DNA of 49,016 nt, counting the filler, from Bipalium vagum (Eukaryota): NCBI GenBank assembly GCA_037834085.1. It is 2 parts of 2 records of this genome, joined end to end, with 100 filler letters (N's around TTAATTAATTAA, not from the genome) between each part and the next. Parts side by side here need not be neighbours in the genome. Positions count along the whole stretch, not along the records: positions 1 to 23,498 come from JBBMKC010208376.1; 1 more part is not named here. One strand, given 5' to 3'. The notes under the pieces are model-generated. The model was not told where the DNA came from. It saw only the letters and a list, made by a program, of their open reading frames with translations, and ran no database searches. Below, piece after piece: positions 1 through 23,340 of the stretch (the first letter of the stretch is position 1; every line of letters starts with the position of its first letter). The position numbers and the translations under genes are program-made.

Positions 1-885
1 TCGAAAAGTAATTTAAAAATTCCCAGAAATTTTAGTTTGAAAATACTTAGAAAATAAAATAACCCTCTAAAAATAATAATTTTTTTAAGAAGCTTAAAAG
101 AGGTATTTTAATAAATATTAAGGATCATAATAAAATAATTTTAGGGAATTGTTAGGGAATTTTAGAATTTTGATAAAATTTTTAGAATTTTAAGTACAAT
201 TTTGGGAATATCTTAAGAATATTTCGCAGATGAATATCAGTCCCAAATCAGTATATATCATATATCAGTATATAAGCAAAGGGATTTCAGCAGATTTTTA
301 ACCCTCAGAAAACGTGTTTACAATTATTGTCAACTGCAGAGTTCGATAACAGACAAATTCGGAAACAGAGTTCGATAACAGACGAATATTACAGTTCCAT
401 TCACAGGTACTCCAACGTTCATTTTAATGATGGGACTATGTTTACAATTCCCCACCAGAGGGTTATCGGTGAGCAACCGTTAGGGCTCAGACGATAACTC
501 GGGAGTTTTAACCGAAGGCAAATCGTAAGGTCTTTTTATTTAATTTTTTTATTATTTTGTATTAATATTTTATTAATCGTTGACTATATCTAATTATTAG
601 TATTTGATTTAACACTACATTTGATCCGTTTTGACTATATTTAATTATTATTGATAGTATTTGATTAAACGTGTAATTGTTGTGTTGTGATAAGATAGTG
701 TGAGGTAGGTTTAACATTTCAGACATTAATTGTGATCCCAGACTCTTGCATTATCTTGTTCGAATTCCGTGTATTTTCTTTTGCGTTTGTGTGATATAAA
801 TACAGGTGTTGCTTTACTGATTGTTTTTTTGCACCACCTAAGATTTGGAGTCAAGTTTAAATTTGATACACTAAATAGTGAACAA
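1..885 (+). mobile_element. LTR (3' portion) of a gypsy-type family, homologous to 20749-21650
   Basis: Shares the CCCCACCAGAGGG..TGAGCAA..GGCTCAG hairpin, TTTTGCACCA and the terminal TAGTGAACA with 21231-21650. TATA-like GTATATAAG near 272. Short tandem duplication CAGAGTTCGATAACAGAC at ~337-384. Confidence 0.75.
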
Positions 886-1469: not shown

Positions 1470-2800
1470 AAACCTAATCCATTTAAGTATTCAGCTCGGA
1501 TATACATGTTTGAGCCAAGCTAAATAATTAAAGCTCCCGGATTGACATTATCATAATGGGAAAGGGGAGCGGATGGGTCACCTAGAGATGAAGAGCTTGT
1601 GAGCTTAGCATCAAGAGCAGCCACAGAGTCAATTATTGAGCTGAGGCGACTAAGGACTGGTTGAGCTGGATAACTGATAGCTCCGGGTTTCTGAGTAGGC
1701 AAAACCAGAAGAGGAAGATCCCCCTGATATGATTAGCGATTGGCGAATGGTGGAAAACTGGAGAATATAATTAACTACCAGATCTTCCATCGCAAAACCA
1801 AAATAGAACAAGAAATTGCGAAGACAGAAGCTGCGAAGATAGTTGGCTTTTATGACTAATGGTAGTGGTAGTAGTAGACCTGTCAATAATGGCGCAGGAT
1901 TTAAAGGTGTTGAGCCGAACAAATTCATTGGAAGAAAGAGTCGATTCGGATGTAAATGTTTCAATGGCTTTGGTAGTACCGATTGAAGATAATCATGACT
2001 AACGTCCTGATGCATTAGGAAGAGAATTTGAAAGAGAACCAAGAAATAAAGATAAAATAATTAAAATATTGAGCCGTGGCTGAATTAACAGTATTTCCTG
2101 CTATATTACAACAAGTGGTTCAGGTGATAAAACTTCATATGGTTGAATTTGGTGCACACCCAAAGATCAGATCAGTGGTAAGTAGGTATGGAAGGTATGT
2201 GCGGTTAAGAGGAGTTTGTCAAGGGACTACAAAGGTAAAATTAGGAATGATCGGGTTTGAAAATCAGATTTTAGAGGTGCATTATTGTTTAAAGGTAAAA
2301 TTGTTGAGAGAGAGCTTGAAGGATAATGGGTGATTGTAATTTCATGTGAAGCTCAGTAGTTAGATGATGACGAATATTTGATGGAGAAAGGTAGTAATGC
2401 ATCAAAGAGACATTTTTGATGGCGATTCAAGTAGATGATCAATGTGAGCTAGCTAATACATTGAATAGTTATTTGAAGTCATTAGTGAAACATAAAGTGT
2501 TTCGTACGGCAAGAGAGTATGGTGAAGTATCAAGTACAGAAGTTCAATATCCAGATTCTGTGGTGTCAGAAGAAATAATCAATGAACAAGAGACATTGGA
2601 ATACGGAGAAACACCATTATCTGATGAATTAGTGTCAATTCAAGCTATAGTTTCCGAATTGATACCACAAGAACTGATACTAAGAATGCCCGAACTGAAA
2701 GATCAGTTAAGAAAAAGTCAGTATCAATCAGAAAACCTTACATTGGCAAAATGGGGAGAAAGTTATAATGATCGAGTGTCAATAGATGTTATCCATGAAT
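1470..2800 (+). mobile_element. Decayed gypsy gag/protease region related to the element at 21658-23340
   Basis: SLEERVDSDVNVSMALVVPIED..PDALGREFER (~1925-2040) aligns by eye with SLKEKVDVNGNVIMALVDLDEE..PGVLEREFAR (23140-23255). Many stops. Confidence 0.55.
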
Positions 2801-3660
2801 GTACTAAGAAAAGGAGACGATTTGGGGTGTTTTATAAAAAGATGTCAAAGAAACTTTGACATTAAGGAAACCCCAATAAAGAAGAGAAAAACAGCGATTT
2901 ATGCGCTGTTACACGAAGACCTATGAGAGGCCTACGAGGAAACATCTGGGAAGGCAAGAGGATTTGAAGCTAGAATCCGTCTATTGTTTGAGAAAGAAAA
3001 AATGTCGTTGACGACTGCGAAGAATTAATAATGTATAGAAGAGGCAGTGAGGACATTGAAGGCTTTTTTTAGGAATGTTAGATCATTGGTAGAGAAAGTA
3101 CTGTCACATGATCTGACCGTTGAAAAGCTTGAGGCACTGTTCTTAGTAAAATGCATTGGAGATGAGGTCGCACGAGAAGTCAAAATGCGAAGGCTGGGGA
3201 AAGGAAGCGAAATTAAAGATTTGATGAGATTGATAACCGACATCAAAGAAAAAGTCGGTAAAGGCAGTATGGAGTTACAGAGATGTTGTTATAAGGACAC
3301 CAGAATACTCTCATTTATAGGAAGACATATCGCAAGAGAAAATATTAAATGTTATGGATGTAATAAAGATAGCCATTTAGCTTGTAACTGTACGGCAAGA
3401 AGACAAATAGAATGCTGGACCTGTTCGAGTCAGGGTCACATTAGCAGGGATTGTCCAAAAAAGAAACCTTAAGTATGCTTCGGATGTCAGAGAGAGGGTC
3501 ATATTAGGAGAAATTGTCCAAATATAAAGTATAAACAGGAATGAGCATAGTGAAAGGGAATTTTATACGAACCTTCACGATGGTAGGAGTTTTCAAGCAC
3601 AGATGATCAGAGGTCCAAAAAAAGCTTATAGAAGAAATAACTTAAATGCATTAGAAGATT
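2800..3660 (+). mobile_element. Decayed gypsy Gag with tandem CCHC zinc knuckles
   Basis: Knuckles CYGCNKDSHLACNC, CWTCSSQGHISRDC and CFGCQREGHIRRNC. The N-terminal part (IYALLHEDL*EAYEETSGKARGFEAR) resembles the Gag at 16744-16968. Confidence 0.85.
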
Positions 3661-3684
3661 AAACAATATTAAAATACCTAAAAG

Positions 3685-4355
3685 TTGTTGGGTTAGCTAA
3701 GGACACATCCCTGTAAACCCTTGTAAAAGCATATGTTAGAGACCGCAATAGGGTCTAGATTGGTTACCATTATTATCAATTAATTATTAAGACCGCAAAA
3801 GGGTCAGAAATAAAATAATAATAATTAATTAATTAAATAAAAAGTACATTCAAACAAAAAGGGCAATTAATTATTTCCAAAATAGATCTAATCTTGACAA
3901 CGGCGAACCTTAATTGCCAATATCAGATCAAAAATCGCAACGAGGGATCGATTTAGAATTATCGATCTAAAAAGGGAATCGACATTCCCCATTAGTCAAG
4001 CTGATCTACGACTGATTTGTCGTCTGATCAGAAGATGAAATTCGCAGTGGATTGCCAGAAAATCTCTGAGAGAAATTTGCGTCAGAAGGCACAATTTTTT
4101 CTTGGAGTTAGCAATCACTCTTCATGCCCTCTCTGCGACAGGAGCTCACAACGGGTCCTTTGTTGTTACGAGTTTTCTGAGCAAACCCGGTTGGGCTCAG
4201 CAAACCACCCTTTGGACCTGTCGTAGTCACAACTGGTGAGAGTATCTTCACTTTATTTTCTTTGTTTTTTTCTAAAATAATTAATATTTTGTGGAAACTC
4301 CCGAAACCATCCAAAAATTCCAAATGACAATATAATATTTTTGTGCACCAATAAC
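3685..4355 (+). mobile_element. LTR copy of the structured-LTR family (3' end uncertain)
   Basis: Begins TGTTGGGTTAGCTAAGGACACATCC, nearly identical to 40971. Shares GACCGCAA..GGGTC hairpins, the GATCTAATCTTG palindrome and the leader multi-stem with 40971-41725. Confidence 0.8.
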
Positions 4356-6100
4356 ATTATTATGTGATCAATTAATAAAAACTTTGTTTATTTAATTAGT
4401 TGTATTTATTTTTTATATATTTCATGTCAAAATAATCCTTTGCCGAAAATTTAATATATAATAAAGATTAAATAAAATAAAATATAAATAATAATAATAA
4501 TTATTATTGTTATTATTATTGTTGTTGTACATAAATTAATACAAAAGTCGTGAAAAAAAAACTAAAAATAGATTTTTTATAAAAAATTATGTATCAAAAG
4601 TTATAATTAGCAAGATATGTATAAAACATATTTAATTTATTATTTTAGTAAAAATTGCTACTAAAAATAATGTAGCTATTAGGAATTACATATAAATACA
4701 ATCAACATTTTTGTTGACTTGCACAAAATAGTCGACATAAAATAAACAGCGCAAATAAACGGCTCAAAAAAATAAAAGCGAAATATTTTGATCACGACAA
4801 ATTCAGAAACAGATAAATCAGACATATTCAAATCACGAAGCCATAATATCAATAACAATACAAATCATCCAAGTAGCTCAAATTATTTACATATAATCAG
4901 GTCAACGATTCACAAATAATTCAATAACAAATGTTATGCTCTATAGCAAGCAATTAATTTTATCTATTATTATTTTCTTTTTCTTTTAATAAATATTTTG
5001 CGTAATTGGTAATTTTTAATAAATTACACAATTACAATTATTTTAAATAACTGAAATCAAAAACCCTCAGTTGGTAATTTTCAATAAATTGCACAACTGT
5101 TTTAATTAATTATCTTATAAATAAATGCTAGGATCTAGCCCTAAAATCATGTAATCCTTTTTGTTATTTCCTCACTTCGGTTGCAGATTTTTGTTTTTCG
5201 CAGTTCACACACTAATTAGGGTGGTGAATTGTCTATCGTTGATATTTTTATCAGTGCGAAAAGATTTCCTTCCTTTAAATAATCCTAAACTCGGGGAAAG
5301 TTTTCTTACAGAGGATTGTTCAAACAGTAATCACTCTTGATTTGTAAAGTTACACAACTGTTTTGTTATTTAGTATCAATAAAGTATATAAAAACAATTT
5401 ATTTTAGTCAATTAAAAATCATAGAAAAAGCACGCTTCCAAAAACCTTCTAACCGTTAAGCTTTTAGTTCGCTCCACTTTTTAAGAGACTTAACAATTTA
5501 ATTATTTGATTGATTATTACCATTTGATTTTTAGTGATTACTTGAGACATTTTGTGATTGTTATTTTAGCAAGTTTTGTTCGTAGTTGTCTTGATTCATT
5601 CATTTGCGTCAAAAGTGAAGGGGTCAGTAAACTTTTCGAGCTAAGTGTTACGACAGTGTTCATTTTAAATAATAGCGTAACAAAATTTAATTTTACACTC
5701 TCAGTCTTGCCTCATTACATTTTCACAAACTACATCTGAAAGTTTATTTTGATCTCAATCCCTTTCTGAACTAAAATTTGAATCCCCTAATATTCTCTAC
5801 CTTAATATCATTTTTTCCTTCCTTCCCCTAATTTCATAAACTATTAACAATAACTTAACCACCATTCGGGAAATTTTTACTTTTTCGAGAAAACCAACTT
5901 AATAATATTTTACAATCTTATTATTGCTACGTTACTAAAATACACTTCGTCGTCCCTTCCTGGTTTCTTTTCTACTCAAAACTAGTACCTTTTCGACGAA
6001 CATATTTTAAATAAGATTTCGATAAAACTGAATGATTTGATTATTCAGATATAAGTAAAAACAAACGAAACAAATTATATTTAATCTATCAATTGAATAT

Positions 6101-9100
6101 TTATTTTCTTTCTTCGAAAGCCTTAGATTTATTCTAAAATTTATTAATAAGACCCAGTAACAAAAAAAAATTACCTGAACATTTTCGCAAAAAGCATTTC
6201 TGGAGATTAAATTTTTCAGTTTTTCATTTTCAGTTTTTAATTGCCTTATTTTCTCTTCCATTTTTTCAAATTGTACCCTCTTTGCTCGATATCGTGCTTT
6301 AAGATCATTGTAGTGATTAAGTAAAGTATCAAATGATTTCAGTCCTTCATTCTGTCGTTCGAGCACCTTTGAATTTTGATTAACTATCGACTTAAGTCTA
6401 TCAAGTTCCTTTTGCTTTTCTATCAACTCGGAAACATTAATCAAATTTTTACTGCCAATACTTGATATTTCAAGTGTCTCAAAACGGGCTTTCAGAGACT
6501 GGTTTTGGAATTTTTCTTCTTCTAAGACCTGATTACCTTTTACAATTTCAGATTCCAGCAATGATACTTTTTCTTTCATCAAATCCATTGAATTTGAAAG
6601 TTCTGAGAACTTACTATAAGATTTTAACAACTGTTGATCCTTATACATCAGTTCATCTTTGGCATAATTTAACGAACTTGTAGCACTTTGTAATTGACTT
6701 TTGAAACTTTCCACAGTTTCATAGGCTTTTCGAATTATGCACTCATTTTTTCCGAACAAACTTTGATACTCGCTAACACAGATATGCAATAATTCCTCAA
6801 CGGACATTTTGTACATTGCTTTCACTTCATTTCCAGAGTTCTTTTCTATGAAATTCTTTCCCAAGAATTCAATGCTTTCTTTCATTCTCAACGCTTCTAT
6901 TGACTGAACAATAATTTCTTTGAGTGTTCTTGTTTCGCATTCAAATGGTTTTACAATTTCATTAATCAAATATTGATTGGATCTCTCATTTTCGAAGTCT
7001 TCAATCAACAAACTTTGTTCAAAGATTTTCTTTTTTAATATTTCAAATTCCAACTTACACTTTTGTAATTCAGTTTTCAATGCTCTCATTGATTCAGTTT
7101 CTCGTTTTGAAAATTTTTCTTTGGACAATCGTTTAAATTCTATTATTTCTTGTTTTTCCGACAATTTCTTTTGTAGATTATCACAAGATAATCGGAGATT
7201 CTTTTCCACCAACTGAAATTCTGCCATTTTACACTGATTGTCCTTCAAAATTTCTTCGATTTCTTCATGGTGTCTTTTTCTAATCAAATTTATGTCATCT
7301 AATTTTCTCTGAACCTCTTCATTTTGAATGACACATCGCCTTGCACAACTGTTATCCACAAAATTTTTAAAATAGTCTATCCTCTGACATTCTAGTTCCG
7401 CAGTTCGAACATTGATTTCGCTTTTTAAATCAATTTTATCCGAATTTAGCATCGCAATTTGATTTCTGAAGTCTTCACGTTCTTTTTCTTTGGTTTCCTT
7501 TAGGGCGTTCAATTCACATTTCAAATTTGCTACAAGACTTTGCAAATCTTCATTTTCTTTATTTGAGGAGACCAAATCGTTATGCAATGTCTCGATAACT
7601 TTAGTTTTGCGGGATATACTTTCCTCGTACTCCATGATTTTCTCTTTTGAACTGCTAATTTCTTCAGACATTTTACTAGCATTTTCTCTAAGAAATATCA
7701 AGTCACTGAGTTCATCGTTAAACTTATTTCTTTCAGTTTTCAATTTTTGAATTTCAGATTGACAATTAAAGAATTTTAACCTGAAAGAATCCAGAAGTTC
7801 CTTAAGTGAATTTTCCGGCTCATTTTCATTATGATTTTTAACTAATTGATCAATACTTTCAAAATTTTCAAAAACTGAAGTTTCCATATATTTTATTGCA
7901 CAAATCAATTCTTTTATTTTATCTAATTCAAAATAAAGCTTTTCATTATCTTCTCTTAAAGTCAACAACTTTTTCTCTATCTCTGCTTTATCTTGCACCA
8001 CAGTTTTAAGATGATCTTTCAATTCAGAATGACTGGCTTCCATCTGAAGTTCATATTCCAATTTTTCAAACATGCACGTTGAATTCAAATCAACATTTTG
8101 GAAATGAACTTTAATTTTTTTAATCAAAATACAACAAAAGTGATAGATAAAATCTTCCAATTTAAAGGAAGATTTATTCATATCCTTAAAATTATTTGAT
8201 AAAAATTGTGTAAAAATGGAGAAAGATTTTTCAACCAAATATTCAAATTTGTCTTTTTCTTCCCATTCCAATTTCTCTAATTTTTCTGATAGCATATCTA
8301 AAATGTTAATATCATCTAACATTTCCAGACTTAAAAGTGATTTATTTTGTTGCGGCAATCTTTTGGAATTTGACAATTTAGAATTTTGTAAATTTGAGAT
8401 GCTCTACAAAATTAATGAACATAAATTCAATATAACACTAGTATATATCTTTAAGAATTTCTACTGTCAAAAAATGGTTTAATGTTTTAAAACTATTAAG
8501 GAATGAAGTAATTTTTTCAAATTTCTTAATTCACTTTTTAAATTAAAATATATTGATAGTTACAAAAAATAATGGTAAAATTTAAATGATCACAATAATT
8601 ATGAGCAAGATAAAAGGTTTATGAAAATGAAAAATAAAATATCAAAATAAACTTTTTCAGATGAATACATATTTTCTTCATTTTTCAAACAAATAGTATC
8701 AATGTTAAACAAGTCCAAATCCAAAATTGAGTCATTCATTGCACTGTTCTTGTTATCAATATCCTCATTTTGATTAATACTTAAACAACTTTGCTTAATA
8801 ATTGAGATTAGTTCAGGAATGGATTCATCATATGAAAGAATTTTTCCACTTTCAATAATTATACTTCTTAAGGAGTTACGATAAACTTCTTCGAAAGTAA
8901 TAAATTCATTCACTTTATAATTAAGTTCGAGGCATTCATTTATTTGCTCTTCAAGATCATTGTTGATTTTATCAATGTATAACTTTGCCTGTTCTAACTC
9001 AGTCGATTTTTTCTCAAGTTCATATTGATTTACAAGTTCTTCAATTCTGAATTCTGCGACTTCTAATTTGTCTCTTACAGAATCCATTTCAATTTGTAAT

Positions 9101-9134
9101 TTATTTTCATTATCAAATCTTTTCATAGTTGGAA
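6101..9134 (-). CDS. Large coiled-coil protein (~900 aa, family not identified). Exons 9134-8653, 8403-6175, 6133-6101; 5' end uncertain (upstream exon or ATG at 9126)
   Basis: Long E/K/L-rich open frames in AT-rich DNA. GT-AG junctions keep frame (SSEK|SISNL; ENVQ|NKSKAFEERK*). The last intron is 41 nt. Confidence 0.8.
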
Positions 9135-9784
9135 CTAAAAATAATTTTAAAATACTCATAATTAACATAAACTAAATCATATTAAAATATATTTCATGTT
9201 AACTTTTCTACTTATATATAAACAAATTCATGAAATTGAAATTTAAATTCATAATGTTAATTTAATTCTTGTCTGATAAAATGACTAATTTTGATTTAAT
9301 TAATATTAAATATAAAATTATTTAATCTTTAAATTAGAAAGTTTTGGTGATTTTAAAACTACCATATTCCTGAGTTACTGAATTTTACATTTTTGTCTTT
9401 GTTAATGTTTACCATACTAATTATCTCTACTTATATCTCTTCATTTTTATATATAAGATATCTAATTTAATTCTCATAATGTAAGTAATACTGAAACAAA
9501 ACTTGATATGTGTGTATCGATTCATTTTTCTTGATTGATAAATTTTCATAAAAAGAAAATTTAATAAAATTGCTTAAAACAATTAAAAACTTAAATATAT
9601 TTTTAAAATTTTTATTTCGGTTTAAATTCCGTAAACAGAGTTTGTTTTAATATTTAATATTTAATTTTGTGAATGAATAAGTTCTAAACGATAATATTTA
9701 TTTGTACAAGCTGAATAAATTTACTTTTTGTTTTATTAGTTAAGCAAATTAAATGTTTGATGAACTTACTTTTCAAACTGTGAA

Positions 9785-10400
9785 CTACTTCAAATCCAAA
9801 ATTATGTTTCGTAAAAGATGTAACCATTTTCGATTTCCCTTTTCAGTAAATTTTTTGAACATTAAATATTTTAGAGTTTTATTAAACCTTTCTATTACAA
9901 CTGCTTTTCCTTCATTCTCTGTTGAGTAAATTTCTATTTCATTATCACCACAAAATTCTTCAAAAGTTTTATTGTAAAATTCTGACTCTCTTGGTAAACC
10001 TAATCTTAAAGTTACCTTTCCTTTCATTATTAATTTTACAATTGCTCTTTCAAGTTTTTCTCTTGGAGTTGGATTTTGAATATTGTTCATTTCGAGAATT
10101 ATTTCTACATCTTTTCTTTTAAATCTGTTGATATACATTTTACACCATGTTTTATTGGTGCTTGATCAATTTGATTTATTGGAATTGAATCAGGTTTTGG
10201 AATTACGAGAATTGATAAATCTTGATTATCTTCATCATTTTCTAATATTTCTTCATAGTTTTCTAAATGTTTGTCAATATTAGTTCCAGGTCCTGTAAAA
10301 TTGTGAAGTAGATTTGTTTTGTTTAAAGGATTTACAGATTTTAAATGTAATTCAGCTGGATATTTGCCAGTTGTAAATTTGTTAAAAAATTATTATTAGT
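9785..10400 (-). pseudogene. Polinton/Maverick remnant: PLA2X (parvovirus VP1u-like phospholipase) joined to an rve integrase C-terminal core
   Basis: HNFTGPGT (10282-10305), INQIDQAPIKH, and NPTPREKLERAIVKLIMKGKV, followed by ESEFYNKTF..IEIYSTENEGKAVVIERFNKTLK..KW. Confidence 0.8.
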
Positions 10401-12399: not shown

Positions 12400-13880
12400 A
12401 AGATTATCATGACCAGCTTTTTTTGCAGATAAATATTTTCTCAAAGTTATAAATTGATCAAGTGAATGCTTTGGTTTATAGATTTGAAAACCTTTTCCTT
12501 CAGCTTTTATTTCTTGTAATTAATACATGTTTTCTAATATTCTTAATATATTTTGTTTTATTTCCTTTAAGGTTTATGCTTTTTATTAGTTCATCATATT
12601 TTTATATTTCTTCATTTTTAAAGTCAGGTTTAAAATTTCCTTTTATAATTTTCTAAATTCATTTGTTATTATATATTCCTTTTGTGTATTATTATCTCTT
12701 AGACATTCATCTTTATTTATAATTTTTAACACTTTTTTATTTATTTTAAATTATTTCTTTCAATAATTGGTATTAAACTTGATGACAATTTTTTATCTAC
12801 GTTCAAAGATAATAATGGAAGTTGATCATTTGTAAAGTTTTGTTGAACATTTATTATCTGTTTTATTTTGTTAGTTGAATTTGAATGATAGAACTTGTAT
12901 TCATTTTTCCTAATTTATCTACAAGTTTATGAAATGTATCTAAATCAGTTATTAATCCACTTTCTAATTTCCATTTTAATTAATTGATTAGTTGCAAATT
13001 TATTTTTTGCAGCTATTAATTTTTCTAATTCTTCAAATCTTCTTTTATTAAAATTTAATATTAAAATTCATTTAAAACTATTATTTTTGAGAACTTCGTT
13101 TGTATTTTTTAAAAATAAAAATGTATTATACAACAAATAAAAATGCGATAGAAGATTTTAACACTAAAAGTGTTGTTTCTATTTTTCCCAAGGAAATTCA
13201 TAATTTACAATTCCTAAATAATAATAAATATCTTGAAGAGAATAAATTTCAATATTTTTTAAGATATGAAAAGTTTCTAATAAATATAATATTTTGCTTA
13301 ATTCATAATAGTTACATTCATTATCCAATACACTCATTTTTTTAAAAAAATACGAACGAAGTTCTTAAAATTTATAGTTTTTAAAAATAGTACATATATT
13401 TTTTTCTAGACTTTGTCTTTAAAAGCGATGCTTCGCATTATGTTCTTATATCCTTTTCAAACTCTTGTTTCAACTCTTTTTAAACTTCCTTATTTATATT
13501 TTCAATTATTATTTTATCTTGCTCAATTTTGTCATTAGATAATATTATCTTATAAAGCTCTTAATTGAAATATAAAATATTTATTAATTGATGATTCTAT
13601 TGATTCAGAAATTTATCTATATTTCTTTTTATATGTGATTCGTATACAAATTGTTTCACAAAAAATTTTACAGAACCAAAAATTGATCTTGAAACAGGAA
13701 TATAAATTAATACGGCTATTAATAAAGTAGAAATTTCTGTTAATATTGTACTTCCAATTCCTGTTATTCCTCCTATAAAAATACTTCATAATTTTAAATT
13801 TGAGCCTGTAAAAGTATTTTTAATTTTTTTATAATGTTTTAATAAATCTTTTAATACTTTTTTTTATCGCTTCTTCACCT
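12400..13880 (-). mobile_element. Very AT-rich decayed Polinton-like ORF debris
   Basis: K/N/I-rich broken frames, including a basic-then-hydrophobic small ORF (KHYKKIKNTF..IFIGGITGIGSTIL). Also a GAACTTCGTT inverted repeat. Confidence 0.35.
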
Positions 13881-16800
13881 TAAATAAAAATCTCTTTCTT
13901 GTTATTCGCATTGAGGTTTTCAGTCTTCACTGTATTTAAGGTCTTCGTTTTAGGGTTTCCTGTTTTAGCTTCCTCATGTTGTATCTGACATTGATTACAT
14001 GTATCGCATTTTGGCCTGGACAGCAGATCTGCATTTGTGTGGTCTGTCCCTTTACGGTACTCTAATTGAATATCTAAACTGCTCAAATAATTGATCCACG
14101 TTTGGAACTGGGACGTGATTGACTTCTTTGTGCTTAAAAGTAATAGCTTTTTGGTCTGTTCGCAACAAAAATTTCCTGCCGTACAAAAAATGATTAAAAA
14201 GCTTACAAAAATAGTAAATAGCAAGCAACTCTTTTCTGGTCTCGCAGTAACCCTTTTCGTGGCTATTCAACGTGTGAGATCTACGCTACTATCCGTTCTT
14301 TACCATTATTATCCATCTGCGATAAAATTGCACCAATAGCGTCAAAACTTGCGTCCGTATCAAGAATAGTCTTGTCTTAGATCTGGAAAGCACAGTATTG
14401 GACTTGACATCAGGGCCTTTTTCAAATTCACAAATGCTTCTTCTGCAATTTCATTTCACACAAGCTTTTTATTGACATTTCCACACATGCGTTCCAAAGC
14501 TCTAGCTTTTCTTGCATATTCCTTGATGAATTTCCTATAATAATTGCATATTCCTAGGAAACTTCGTAAACCTTTTTACGCAGTTTGGTTTGTTGAAAGA
14601 TGTAATGGCTTCTATCTTCTGTAGATTCATCTTAATCCCTTTTTGATTTAAAAATTGTCCCAAGAATTTTACTTCTTCTTTTAAAAACTGGCATTTTTCA
14701 GGGTTCACTCGCAATCCAGCTTTTTTTATTTTTTAATACCCTATCCAGCCTTGTGTAATGTTGTTCGATGCTGTCTGAAAATACCAAGATATCATCCAGA
14801 TAAACAATTGTTCCTTTCAAACCACCAACTACTTTATTCATAATCCTTTGAAAAGTCCCTGGAGCAGCTGCTATTTCAAACGGCATGCGATTAAAACAAT
14901 ATTGGCCTGTTTTTGTTGAAAAGGCCGTCTTTTCTTTTGACTCTTCATCCAATTCCACTTGGTAATAGGCGTTTCCTAAATCAATAGAACTGAAATATTT
15001 TGACCCACTTAATTGATCTAGCATTTCATCAAGATTTGGGATTGGAAAAGCCGGTCTCTCTGTTATTGCATTGAGCTGTCTGAAATCCAAGCATAATCTG
15101 ATTTCCTGCTTATCTTTTTTCCACACATATATTAAAGACGTGTTCCACGGTGATTGACATTTCCTAATTATGTCATTCTTATGAAGGTTGTTTATTGTTT
15201 CATTGATCTTGTCTTTTAAATTCATCGGCTGTCTAAATGGTTTAATATTAATAGGATTACTTGTTGTTTCTATGTTATGCCGAGCTAAATGAGTGCATCC
15301 GAAGTCCCATTTATCAGCCATAAAGGCGTCTTCATTTTCTTGAATAATTTTACCTAACTGTGACTTCTGTTCTATTTTCAATGCTGTTAATGTTCGATGT
15401 TGTCGTTCTCCAATGTTTATTTGTCTCCCAAATTTTGCCTCAATATTGCAAATAAATGGTTTTTCTCTGTCTTCTATTTTGTTTATTTGCACTTTCGTAG
15501 TTAAGTTTTCTTGCTTTAATACAAAACCAAACTATCATTGTAATTCTACACATCCTATCGTCAGGAGTAATATTTTTCAGCACAATAAAATTAATTTCTG
15601 CTTGTCTGCCTTCTATTACAACATTTACTGACATTTTCCCATAGTTTCTGATGCGCTGTCACTTGCACATCGTAATCTGTCTTCACATTTTCTTAGTTGA
15701 ATATTACACAATATTTTAGCTATATTACTGCTCATTATATTATTTCTGACCGATGTATCTAATAAACATTCCAACCTCAACTCTTGTATCATTACTGTCA
15801 CACTCGGCCTCCCCTAAATCACATATTATCGCTAACCATATTCACTCATCCAGTATCATATCTATTACTCACCTCACAATTCTCTCTTTTTATAAATCTT
15901 TATATTTTTTCGTTCACCCTGTCATCTTCTCTTCCATCCACGGCCTCCTGGGAATAATCACTGACGATATTTAGTTGATGGCTCCGACTAGCTCCCCGAC
16001 TAGTGGATCCCTGTTGTTTGGGTGTTTCTCATCTTCAGGTATATCACTTCTATAGCATTCATCCTGTTAAAACTTACTCTGTTTCTTGTTGGCATTTCTC
16101 CCTGACTTCTAGATTCGTATCTACGTGAATCGAATTGTGCATAGCATTTTGACATAATGTCCATGTTTTTTGCATCTTAAACAGACAACATTGGGACATG
16201 ATTTTTTATGTCCAGGTTTTCTACACGCGAAAAATTTTCTGTCAGAACATTCTCTACTTAAATGTCGCATTTTGTTGCAAGACCAACAAACAATATCACT
16301 TTGGTCTCTTCACCTGTTAATACTATGGTAGTTACCTGTCATGTGTCTTGATCCTGCAAAATTCTTCGGTACTGTGTGATATTCAGGAATCTTTGTTGTC
16401 TGTACCATCTTCATTTTATTCTGTTTTGTATTCACTGCAGTTTCGGTCAAAATTGATTTTCTCGTTTCCCTTTTGATTAATTACTTCCATTTTTTTCATC
16501 AGAGCTTCAATATCATCCATATTTTTAGTTTCCTCATTTCTACTTCTCGAACCATTTCTTCGTCATTCACGAAGTATAATAACATTCTTGATATTAAATT
16601 TTCTGTGATTTGATACGCCAACGCCTTTTCACTTTCTTCTTTATTATCTTCACGAATGATTGGATATCTTCGTTTCCTCTTCGATATTGTAATAGGTTTT
16701 CCAAATCTGATATCATGTCCACCGGTTCTGCAAAAGCTGGTCGCTATTTAACTTCAAAGCCATCTGCTTTTGAAAATGTTTTTTCATAATCTTCGATGAG

Positions 16801-16968
16801 ATCTTCGTCAATCACGGTATTGATCATCCTTTCTCTGGCCTTTTTTGATTTTTCTACTAAATCAAAATACCTTCGACATTGGCCAATAAATTTTTCGATG
16901 TTGTCGCCTCTTTGCAGAATTTTGGGTAACAGTCTTCCAGCCAATGGATCTACTGGTGTGGTCGCCAT
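13880..16968 (-). mobile_element. Ty3/gypsy LTR retrotransposon internal region (gag-pro-RT-RNaseH), degenerate and truncated before integrase
   Basis: RT motifs RLCLDFRQLN, FSSIDLGNAYYQV, KTAF, FNRMPF and YLDD. RNase H motifs LDTDAS, RKELLAI and LRTDQKA; also NADLLSR. Gag CCHC knuckles at ~16130-16295. PBS-like TGGCGACC at 16967. Confidence 0.95.
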
Positions 16969-17189
16969 GTTAATCTGTTCAGTATTATCAAAAAATCCAA
17001 TCAAAAACAATAATTTCGACCCTGTTCTGATTATTTAAACAATAATCATTAGTAAATTTAATTATTTCCATTACAATGATTATTTTCTAACAAATAAATT
17101 TATTTCTTTTCAGAATTATAATAATATGAATTGAAATGTTAAAGATTGTAAGTCAGTTCCATTATATTTTTGTGTCTTCTGAGATACTA

Positions 17190-20748: not shown

Positions 20749-21650
20749 TTATTGGGTTTACCAAAACACTCATCCGTCCCAAATGAAAATTGTAAAAGGA
20801 TGTTTAAAATAATAAGAATAATAATTAAATAACAATTTTTGCTAATTAAAAAGTACAAAGTTAATTAAAAAGGGAAAAAAGGCAATAATTTATTTTTTGT
20901 TGGGATCTAATCTTGACAATGGCGAACCTAAATTGCCAAGATTAGATCAGGGTCTGCAAGGAGGGACCGATTTAGGATTAATGATCCTAAAAGGAAATAT
21001 TGACATTTCCCATTAATAAAATTAGTCGTCGACAAAAATACTGTATAAGAAGAAGGATTCTACCATAAATTAGCCCACAATCACGAGATCAACATTTTGA
21101 AGAAACTTTTTAGAAGACGACAATTTCAAGATGTTCGTTGAGATTCAAGCCAGACGACAGATTCAAGATATTCGGAAGACTATAATTCTGAAGTATTTTT
21201 AATGCATTTGGTCTTGGGATTGGGTTTGAGTTCCCCACCAGAGGGCTATTTCTGAGCAACTGTAAAGGCTCAGCTAATAGTCCGGGAAACCTAAACGAAG
21301 ATAATTCGTATGCTTATTTCATTTTTTTATTTTCACCTTAATATTATTTTTGGTTAAAACTAAGTAATTTGATTATATTATTTCATATTAACTATTGATT
21401 AACTTTAAGTATTTATTTGTGTTCTTAACTCGAATTTGGTTAACTATTTTGTTTTGATTGATTATTAAAGATAATTGCAGATGTGTCAGATCTTATTGTG
21501 ATTCATTTTCTCTTAAGTTTGACGATTTTAGTGTAATTGTTATCATTGTATGTGTTTTAAGGTGTAAATACAAATTATTGCTTTAATGATTGTTGTTATT
21601 TTGCACCATCTTAGAGTAGGAATCAGGTTTAAAGTTTGAATTAGTGAACA
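20749..21650 (+). mobile_element. 5' LTR of a gypsy element (structured-LTR family)
   Basis: The 5' half matches the 3685 and 40971 copies; the 3' half matches 440-885. Ends TAGTGAACA, 7 nt before a PBS. Confidence 0.8.
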
Positions 21651-21657
21651 TATTTAT

Positions 21658-21682
21658 TGGTGAGCGGCCGACGTGATTCGAA
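21658..21682 (+). promoter_or_regulatory. Primer-binding site complementary to the tRNA-Trp 3' end
   Basis: TGGTGAGCGGCCGACGTGATTCGAA versus the reverse complement of the eukaryotic tRNA-Trp 3' end, TGGTGACCCCGACGTGATTCGAA. Confidence 0.75.
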
Positions 21683-23340
21683 AATCGGTTGGTAATTGTG
21701 AAACTGTGTGGGTGATTGTGTGTTATTGGTCTTTGTCTAGTTTGCGTGACTTGTTTTGAATTTGTAAGCCCTGAATACCGTTTTGATAAATTTTTGGAAC
21801 TTTTAGTAATGGCCGCCGAGGCATAGAAGTTGTTTATAGTGTTTCAGGAAGAAATCAGTAAGCGTCCAGAAAACTAATCTGGCTAGTGGAAAGAAATCAG
21901 TTACAGATATTCGAGGAGTTATAACCAGAAGTTTGACAAAGATAATTAAAGAGAAAGGTGTAGAAGAAAATCATTTAGAAATCTAGGAGAATAACCGAGA
22001 AGGAACATTAGAAGACATTAATACAGGTGTTAAAGAGATAAATATAATGGATTAAGAATTCGTAAAATTACCGGTAGGATATTTAATGGGGAACCAACAG
22101 AATTCGCAGATTTTATGGCTGAGTATTGGCAAGTGACAGAAGCGTTAGGATATGATGAGGCACGGATGGTAAGAAGATTACCGAATCATTTGAGTGGAAT
22201 GGCACAGAGTGCAAATTATGACAAACGTAGCAAACAAAAGTTGGGTCGAAGTGGTTAAGGAATTAACGAAGAAGCTAATTTCGGGAGATATAGGTAGAGT
22301 AAATAGGAAGCAAGGAGCAGAAGAGTCAGTAGGCAAATATGCGTATCAAGTAGAATTATTAGCACAGAGAGCATTCGGATCCAAGAAACAGTGGACACAA
22401 ACAATTAAAAAGATAGTGGAAGATCAGTTTTTCATTGGAATGTTAAAATCATTAAGAACAGCGTTAGGATTGGCAGATTATAAAATTTTCGAAGAGTTAC
22501 TGCAGAAAGCACGAAAAACAAAAATGAATATTAAAGGAAACCCAACGATGATTTGTGAAATAGGAGCAGTTAGAAGAGACAGCAATAGACTAGAAACATG
22601 GAAATAAAGCGAAATGAGACCAATGAGCAAATAGTAAAGAATATTATATTGTCAGAAGCCAGGGAATTTAACGAAGCAATGTGGATCTAGAAAATCAGAA
22701 TTTTGTCCAGGTCCAGCTAGAAATCAGAGGACAAATACAGATATTGTTTGTAGAAACTGTAATGAAACAGGTCATTTGGCAGAAAAGTGTAAAATAAAAA
22801 TTTTTAGGTATTGCAAGAAAAGAGAACATTTGGAAGAGACGTGTTGGGCAAAGAATTCACCTCAAAGAGATAATGTAAACATCGATGAGAAAGTACAATG
22901 CTTTTAATGTAAGGCGTATGAACACATGGTGAAATCTTGTCTTAGTGAAAAGAGATCACAAAAAGTGATTAAAAGGTTGGCATTGGGTAATGAAAAAATA
23001 ATCATGGTAAGAGATATGGAAGACAATAACGAAACCGAAAAATTGAGGGCAGAAAACGGAGATCCAGAGTAATTGGACACGAAATGGTATCAATGATCCA
23101 AATACAGGAAAATGAAATTAAGATATTAACTAGAAACGATTCACTGAAAGAAAAAGTAGATGTTAACGGGAACGTAATAATGGCATTAGTGGATTTGGAT
23201 GAAGAAGAATGTAATACACTTCCTGGGGTACTAGAACGGGAATTCGCAAGGACCTCTAGAAACAAAAACAGAATTATGGATTTGTTAAGTCAGGTAACGG
23301 AACAGGCGGTCACTGCAATGATGCCTGGGAGAAGTCAAAG
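21683..23340 (+). mobile_element. Decayed gypsy Gag region with about four zinc knuckles, truncated
   Basis: Retrotransposon gag motif QGAEESVGKYAYQVELLAQRAF..EDQFFIG. Knuckles YCQKPGNLTKQC, CRNCNETGHLAEKC, YCKKREHLEETC and CF*CKAYEHMVKSC. Confidence 0.85.

Follow-up and report, generated by a model that had tools for sequence, protein, structure and literature searches.

Cis-acting RNA signals have been well mapped for a few retroviruses and hardly at all for LTR retrotransposons. The locus described here raises the question of whether a compact, bulged stem-loop that recurs in otherwise diverged LTRs of Bipalium vagum is a functional RNA element and, if so, what might read it. The window comprises 49,016 nt; our analysis covers its positions 1-23498, a piece of AT-rich eukaryotic DNA that is rich in decayed mobile elements and whose GC content, taken per kb, runs from 18 to 36%. 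Three plus-strand LTRs bear on the question: LTR A, at approximately 150..884 (beginning with TGTTAGG and ending in GTGAACA); LTR B, at 20898..21650 and perhaps extending to 21657 (TGTTGGG to GTGAACA); and LTR C, at approximately 3866..4405, which resembles B in its 5′ part and ends like both A and B. A preliminary description of this DNA had proposed a covarying, bulged RNA stem-loop in the LTR leader, functional in some way and belonging to no recognised family. As set out below, the signals retained in these LTRs suggest, on good but thin evidence, that the hairpin is real, undescribed and probably functional, and that it belongs to a known general class, the structured cis-elements that LTRs carry in their transcribed portion.

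The two full copies of the hairpin, at 448..505 in LTR A and 21231..21288 in LTR B, were delimited by RNAfold, RNAalifold and their alignment to each other, and on the plus strand RNAfold gives both the same architecture, which bears out the bulged stem-loop originally described. From its base, the hairpin consists of an outer stem of 5 bp (UUCCC/GGGAR), lengthened in copy A by two extra outer pairs to 446-507; a one-sided 5′ bulge of 7 nt, CACCAGA, which is invariant between A and B; a middle stem, which spans 9 bp in copy A (GGGUUAUCG/CGAUAACUC) and 8 bp in copy B (GGGCUAUU/AAUAGUCC); a small internal loop that is variable; a 5-bp core helix, UGAGC/GCUCA, whose sequence is identical in A and B; a likewise invariant AA bulge beyond the core; and a tip of 2 bp, which reads CC-GUUA-GG in A and CU-GUAA-AG in B. 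Segments of 91 nt containing the hairpins have plus-strand MFE values of -29.6 (A) and -27.3 (B) kcal/mol, corresponding to z-scores of about -3.0 and -3.1 relative to dinucleotide shuffles, while the minus strands of the same segments reach just -1.3 and -1.6. The hairpins are also about 50% GC, against an average of about 28% for the piece. The small CGAA-type hairpin that had been reported to follow in both copies is a 5-bp stem in B (ACGAA/UUCGU, 21295..21309, plus strand), but in A it shrinks to 3 bp in RNAalifold (513..525, plus strand). It shows no covariation, and this part of the description is only partly borne out.

RNAalifold further indicates an alternative partner for UCCC in the outer stem, namely an invariant GGGA located 13-14 nt upstream. 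It is tempting to speculate that this alternative GGGA/UCCC pairing (432-452 in A and 21216-21235 in B), which is without covariation, could constitute a two-state switch. A separate observation concerns LTR A, where a 13-nt tandem repeat of 3.3 copies (337-382) includes the string CGATAAC; the identical 7-mer forms the 3′ side of the middle stem in copy A (492-498), and the repeat could compete for the 5′ strand. No such CGATAAC-bearing repeat was seen in B. When the conserved island around the hairpin was inspected for a pseudoknot or long-range partner of the bulge or loop, only meaningless G-U pairing with a U run emerged.

To what extent has the fold itself been retained? The comparison set consists of two full copies (A and B) and one partial copy (C), and the main figures derive from a single, ungapped pairwise alignment of A and B in which 21 pairs were scored. 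Although 16 of the 60 aligned positions differ, 20 of the 21 pairs in A remain standard pairs in B: 14 are unchanged, three are changed on both sides (one U-A to C-G and two C-G to U-A), three are altered on one side only, all of them between G-U and G-C, and one is lost. Paired bases do change together, as first proposed, while CACCAGA and AA are the same in A and B. The one-sided changes are tolerated in plus-strand RNA alone, which is the strand that also carries the TATA box, the primer site and gag. When the same substitutions were placed at random on A in 200,000 trials, at least 20 pairs were retained in only 23 of them (P = 1.2e-4), and at least three compensatory pairs arose with P = 0.012. 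Shifting the 3′ partners by 1-3 columns reduces the proportion of cells that can pair from 97.6% to 17-55%, and RNAalifold recovers the same helices with no structure imposed. In the tool used for counting pairs, the shuffle control, which is weak at two to three sequences, was reached in 59/500 cases for A and B and in 20/500 when C was included.

The genomic surroundings of the hairpin add a second line of evidence. In a global alignment, LTRs A and B match at shuffle level (13-20 of 40 columns) everywhere outside two islands. The first island, at 433..572 in A and 21217..21348 in B (both plus strand), reaches 26-31 of 40 identical columns and contains the hairpin, its small companion hairpin, seven consecutive T (544-550 in A, 21322-21328 in B) and the string TTAATATT (562-569 and 21338-21345). 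The second, at 791..884 in A with its counterpart at 21559..21650 in B (plus strand), contains TAAATACA together with a GT-rich stretch and the terminus of the LTR; it is a candidate poly(A) signal followed by U5/att, and its layout fits the order of poly(A) signal, GT-rich stretch and att given in PMC3601003. Since the first island is about 72% identical amid shuffle-level flanks, it appears to be old and not the product of a recent exchange, and its simplest reading is that of an old island retained by selection. As a further observation, exactly seven T in a row, with TTAATATT after another 10-12 nt, are found in all three LTRs (544-569 in A, 21322-21345 in B and 4265-4288 in C), roughly 30-45 nt past the hairpin; this block may be a signal related to 3′-end formation or termination, or mere AT-rich drift.

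The third LTR carries a diverged copy of the hairpin at 4133..4226 (plus strand), located by pattern, RNAfold and covariance model. Its core hairpin (4174-4204) has TGAGCAA...GGCTCAG in common with A and B. The pattern TGAGCAA, 6-14 nt, GGCTCAG matches three times in the piece, always on the plus strand, where no match is expected; the third match, at 4178-4200, is that of copy C. Serving solely as a search profile, a covariance model derived from the A and B copies scores the C core at 14 bits (E ~0.05) and, run over the piece, finds no copy beyond A, B and this core. The remainder of copy C has drifted further: it combines a 3-bp tip and a different loop (GGUU) with a 4-bp middle stem and longer, different outer stems, and it is devoid of the CACCAGA bulge. 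It contributes one additional compensatory pair in the model-fitted alignment, an alignment that itself leans towards structure. Beyond the piece, scanning a collection of viral contigs with the pattern yielded no further hairpin copies; metagenome contigs gave two GC-rich matches that lack the fold, which we took as chance, and genome contigs gave four bacterial matches, which is about the expected number, none with the architecture and likewise attributable to chance.

We then compared the hairpin with known RNA families. Rfam 15 gave no match at gathering thresholds anywhere in the piece and, with E allowed up to 10, none on the hairpins of copies A, B and C; near B and C, the relaxed search returned just far sub-threshold chance rows lying off the hairpins. 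The view that the element belongs to no recognised family is thereby upheld. Taken together, the compensatory changes, the wobbles that are tolerated on the plus strand only, the position within a GC-rich island of otherwise unalignable AT-rich LTRs and the absence of an Rfam match suggest that a sense-strand RNA structure has been under selection, a conclusion with good support considering the small number of copies. Of the proposal that this is a functional RNA, the part that stands is therefore structural selection, for which covariation, strand, island and Rfam result all speak, while the specific roles put forward with it (TAR-like, dimerisation, catalytic) find no support, for the following reasons. 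Likeness to TAR is probably one of shape only, because the hairpin lies about 180 nt past the TATA box (at about +150 if transcription starts some 30 nt past TATAAG) and not at the predicted transcript start, and because no transactivator gene is visible in the piece, whose edge truncates element B and whose remaining copies have decayed. Dimerisation through kissing loops is disfavoured by the apical loops GUUA, GUAA and GGUU, none of which is palindromic or self-complementary. As for catalysis, no Rfam ribozyme matches, no conserved pseudoknot partner is apparent, and the core motifs or folds of hammerhead, HDV-like, twister, twister-sister, hairpin, pistol and hatchet ribozymes were not found with Rfam. 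Several local resemblances were also considered and rejected as neither conserved between copies nor supported by Rfam: that of ACCAGAG to the hairpin ribozyme, that of ACUCGGGAG to 7SL, a GNRA loop with its receptor, and a K-turn.

Where does the hairpin lie within the element? TATAAG boxes are present at 271-276 in LTR A and 21044-21049 in LTR B (plus strand), and each lies upstream of the hairpin start, at a distance of 177 nt in A and 187 nt in B. A purine tract resembling a PPT precedes LTR B (20867..20882, plus strand) and has its equivalent before LTR C (3856-3863, plus strand). Seven nucleotides past LTR B, a plus-strand 25-mer resembling a primer-binding site, as read from the sequence, occupies 21658..21682; it starts with TGG, its complement leads into TTCGAA, a box of the T-loop type, and it may be of tRNA-Trp type. 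ARAGORN detected no tRNA gene anywhere in this piece, and a partial match to the tRNA model of Rfam was likewise absent. The end of the LTR lies about 365 nt downstream of the hairpin; in copy B, the last base of the hairpin is 21288 and the first of the primer site 21658. Contrary to the placement in an LTR leader, between primer site and gag, the hairpin is thus inside the LTR, roughly 180 nt past the TATA box and 365 nt before the LTR end. Most likely it falls in R, the predicted transcript start and poly(A) site being motif-based. As a side observation, the 5′ strand of A's core (467-479) resembles B's primer site (21657-21669) in sharing GGTGAGC and 10/13 positions; B's own hairpin has just TGAGC in common with that site, so the likeness is probably a coincidence.

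Both A and B have the TGTT...AACA ends that form the terminal motif of animal Metaviridae LTRs (PMC3601003), and in B they are accompanied by the purine tract, the TGG-type primer site and a downstream gag. Together with gag relatives bearing Retrotrans_gag and zf-CCHC domains, these features identify the LTRs as being of the Ty3/gypsy type. LTR A is not followed by a primer site and is thus solo or rearranged; no target-site duplication was seen around it. The first 110 nt of LTR C and the preceding 75 nt are 74% identical to B 20823-21015. Within the piece, no two of A, B and C are the paired LTRs of one element, all three being strongly diverged, and B's partner would fall past the piece edge. 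We also noted that the approximately 75 nt before LTR B (20823-20897) match the 3′ internal end that precedes LTR C, meaning that LTR B is flanked by 3′-internal sequence on its left and by primer site and gag on its right; these flanks resemble a tandem or recombinant array of elements with one LTR in common.

The gag of element B extends over 22046..23003 (plus strand); measured against its relatives, it is broken by one or more frameshifts and some four in-frame stops, and the element is cut by the piece edge. A full HMMER search retrieved 12 relatives with Retrotrans_gag (PF03732) and zinc knuckles (zf-CCHC), on which its assignment to the Ty3/gypsy type rests, while a word search with its longest open stretch returned no match in the allowed length range. 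Upstream of LTR C lies a second gag-like region (2400..3523, plus strand), with zinc knuckles at its 3′ end, at least one stop and an uncertain 5′ limit, which is not detectably similar to the gag of B outside the zinc knuckles. Within 2400-4405, this region passes directly, and without an intervening pol, into a short 3′ region, which the purine tract and then LTR C follow; the arrangement, whose 5′ side adjoins the unrelated LTR A, could represent a gag-only, non-autonomous or internally deleted element.

Based on these sequence comparisons, we consider it somewhat more likely than not that the hairpin is a cis-acting element of a Ty3/gypsy-type LTR retrotransposon lineage that acts in the full-length transcript and is read by a protein; our confidence in any one RNA step, be it selection, export or translation, is much lower. 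In this model, the hairpin, sited between the TATA box and the LTR end, would be transcribed within R (or U5), provided that the LTR promoter fires as usual. It would then be found near the 5′ end of the full-length RNA and, if in R, near the 3′ end as well. The covarying helices would serve as a scaffold that presents the invariant CACCAGA and AA bulges and the invariant 5-bp core; such a combination of covarying helices with invariant unpaired bases and an invariant core is typical of protein-recognition sites on RNA, and leads us to propose one here. The likeliest readers would be either Gag/nucleocapsid from the element itself or an RNA-binding protein of the host, which might mark the transcript for selection into particles, for export or for translation. 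The hairpin may thus serve in packaging or in another kind of protein recognition.

Between the two candidate readers, the evidence leans slightly to one side. Zinc-knuckle nucleocapsids prefer G/U-rich sites, and the unpaired bases of the hairpin are A/C-rich, which counts against the proposal. In addition, since the gags by A/C and B are unrelated outside the knuckles, one common Gag-specific signal is not obviously expected, and a host factor is mildly favoured; the same observation would also suit a role at the DNA level. Even for the RNA of Ty1 and Ty3, a precise definition of where Gag binds is lacking (PMC4974528), which makes it plausible that an element of this kind has so far gone undescribed.

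The invariance of the bulge could, alternatively, reflect a constraint on the DNA. Under such an explanation, the invariant CCACCAGAGGG(T/C) would be a site for CTCF or another zinc-finger protein, TGAGC...GCTCA would be the site of a dimeric factor, the LTR would bear a module acting as insulator or enhancer, and folding of the RNA would be secondary. We regard this as unlikely overall, although for the invariant bulge it is a live alternative and several observations speak for it. The invariant 12-mer, composed of the bulge and the first three stem bases (450-461 in A, 21233-21244 in B), coincides with the CTCF core motif as CCACCAGAGGGT in A and CCACCAGAGGGC in B, a string identity and not a weight-matrix score, and each of the two is contained within published CTCF cores (PMC11417384, whose CTCF site is the mouse alpha-globin HS-38; bioRxiv 10.1101/336156). 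Moreover, the two sequence-invariant blocks correspond exactly to the motif and the palindrome arms, and an overlap with CTCF could account for the invariance of the bulge without invoking RNA. Nevertheless, a DNA site leaves unexplained both the three compensatory and three wobble changes and the asymmetry between strands. It also sits poorly with copy C, which retains the core of the hairpin without the 12-mer, and the match was made post hoc to one of many known factor motifs.

The nearest rival at the RNA level, and to our minds an equally unlikely one, is a purely structural R-region hairpin whose stability is what matters, aiding first strand transfer or modulating 3′-end formation. The hairpin is in the probable R region, the conserved T7 run and TTAATATT follow within 32-37 nt in all three LTRs, and TAR and poly(A) hairpins figure in the literature on retroviral strand transfer and polyadenylation. 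A thermodynamic role, however, has no need of an invariant 7-nt bulge, AA bulge and core helix, and a better candidate poly(A) signal, complete with GT-rich stretch, lies about 300 nt on in the second island.

It might further be argued that there is no function at all, and that an inverted repeat has persisted by chance, or owes the retention of its symmetry to mutational template switching, in a patch recombined between LTR families. This is consistent with there being just one independent pairwise comparison, with the weak shuffle control noted above and with the decayed state of all elements here. We nonetheless judge it improbable in view of the P value of about 1e-4 for the retention of 20/21 pairs, the tolerance of G-U pairs on one strand only, the age implied by an island at about 72% identity between shuffle-level flanks, and the retention of the core by a third LTR.

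More ambitious readings fare no better. That the hairpin founds a new class of retroelement RNA device strikes us as quite improbable, whichever of three forms it might take. One possibility would be a dual-coded module, in which an RNA switch, its UCCC able to pair with either the upstream or the downstream GGGA, houses a zinc-finger (CTCF-type) DNA site in its bulge. Another would be a mimic of a tRNA 3′ end that regulates priming, for which one may point to the bulge reading CACCA and to the 3′ strand of the core resembling the end implied by B's primer site. The remaining one would be a small ribozyme. A precursor of miRNA- or siRNA-like small RNAs, made from LTR transcripts, would fit the dimensions of the hairpin (about 60 nt, some 20 pairs) and its place in a repeat that is probably transcribed, yet it is very improbable: canonical precursors are unlike a hairpin with a one-sided 7-nt bulge and a tetraloop, conservation peaks in the bulge and core and not along one arm, and no Rfam miRNA model matches. 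Least credible of all is an undescribed self-cleaving ribozyme, to which the invariant unpaired bases framed by covarying helices and the hammerheads borne by the LTRs of plant retrozymes might lend some colour, but which is at odds with the lack of any Rfam ribozyme match at E up to 10, the single unbranched hairpin without a conserved partner for its bulge or loop, and the missing bulge in copy C.

Returning to the protein-read hairpin, its closest analogues are the R hairpins of retroviruses, namely TAR and the lentiviral poly(A) hairpin. Like these, it is bulged, located in the LTR past the promoter and on the sense strand, with helices retained by compensatory change and constrained unpaired bases; residual conservation in long R regions has, in fact, been linked to stem-loops (PMC3601003). 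Unlike them, it is found at about +150 instead of the predicted transcript start, has no poly(A) signal in its loop, no visible transactivator gene and no similarity in sequence or model, and belongs to a Ty3/gypsy-type element and not to a retrovirus. The retroviral U5-IR and self-primed Tf1, cited in PMC3601003 and PMC4974528, likewise feature a conserved LTR stem-loop with a role in the RNA life cycle. However, the U5-IR stem adjoins the primer binding site, whereas the hairpin described here is about 365 nt upstream of it and is therefore not the U5-IR stem. Ty1 and Ty3 have their own cis-acting RNA in the form of a pseudoknot, bipartite primer sites and Gag-binding regions (PMC4974528, PMC3681743); these too are structured 5′ RNA regions that serve priming, dimerisation or packaging, but they occupy the 5′ UTR/gag and primer sites in place of a long R and are unrelated in sequence. 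Plant retrozyme hammerheads share with our hairpin the presence of a small structured RNA motif inside an LTR, although the latter has no hammerhead core and sits on gag-bearing elements. Finally, CTCF sites borne by transposable elements resemble it in that its 12-mer equals a published CTCF core in a repeat able to spread sites, and differ in that the 12-mer is here embedded in covarying RNA helices and is absent from copy C.

A compact hairpin that outlasts the divergence of the surrounding LTR would provide a concrete candidate cis signal for the Ty3/gypsy group, and would be a useful marker by which LTRs of the lineage could be recognised after divergence. Were the CTCF-type explanation true instead, it would describe a retrotransposon that spreads architectural-protein sites in an AT-rich genome. 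On present evidence, either reading is incremental and not field-changing.

Other sequences in the piece complete the picture of its mobile-element content. On the minus strand, 13880-17010 holds a separate decayed Ty3/gypsy-type element with protease, RT and RNase H, in which the covariance-model search found no copy of the hairpin. Its closest relatives are metagenome proteins at 45-68% identity; named relatives of its RT, from sponge, rotifer and fungi, are at 34-41%, and its pol is interrupted by one or more frameshifts and by 6-14 stops, the count varying with the relative chosen for comparison. The segment 17580-18060 may hold a fragment of a Tc1/mariner-type transposase (HTH_Tnp_Tc3_2, reaching just E 0.07), and 9785-10138 may hold one of an integrase-like protein (read by eye, without a Pfam match). 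The minus strand of 6007-9168 encodes a long coiled-coil ORF of 789 codons with a probable upstream exon; a word search returned no relative and Fez1 matched at sub-threshold level only, and the ORF is probably a fast-evolving host gene.
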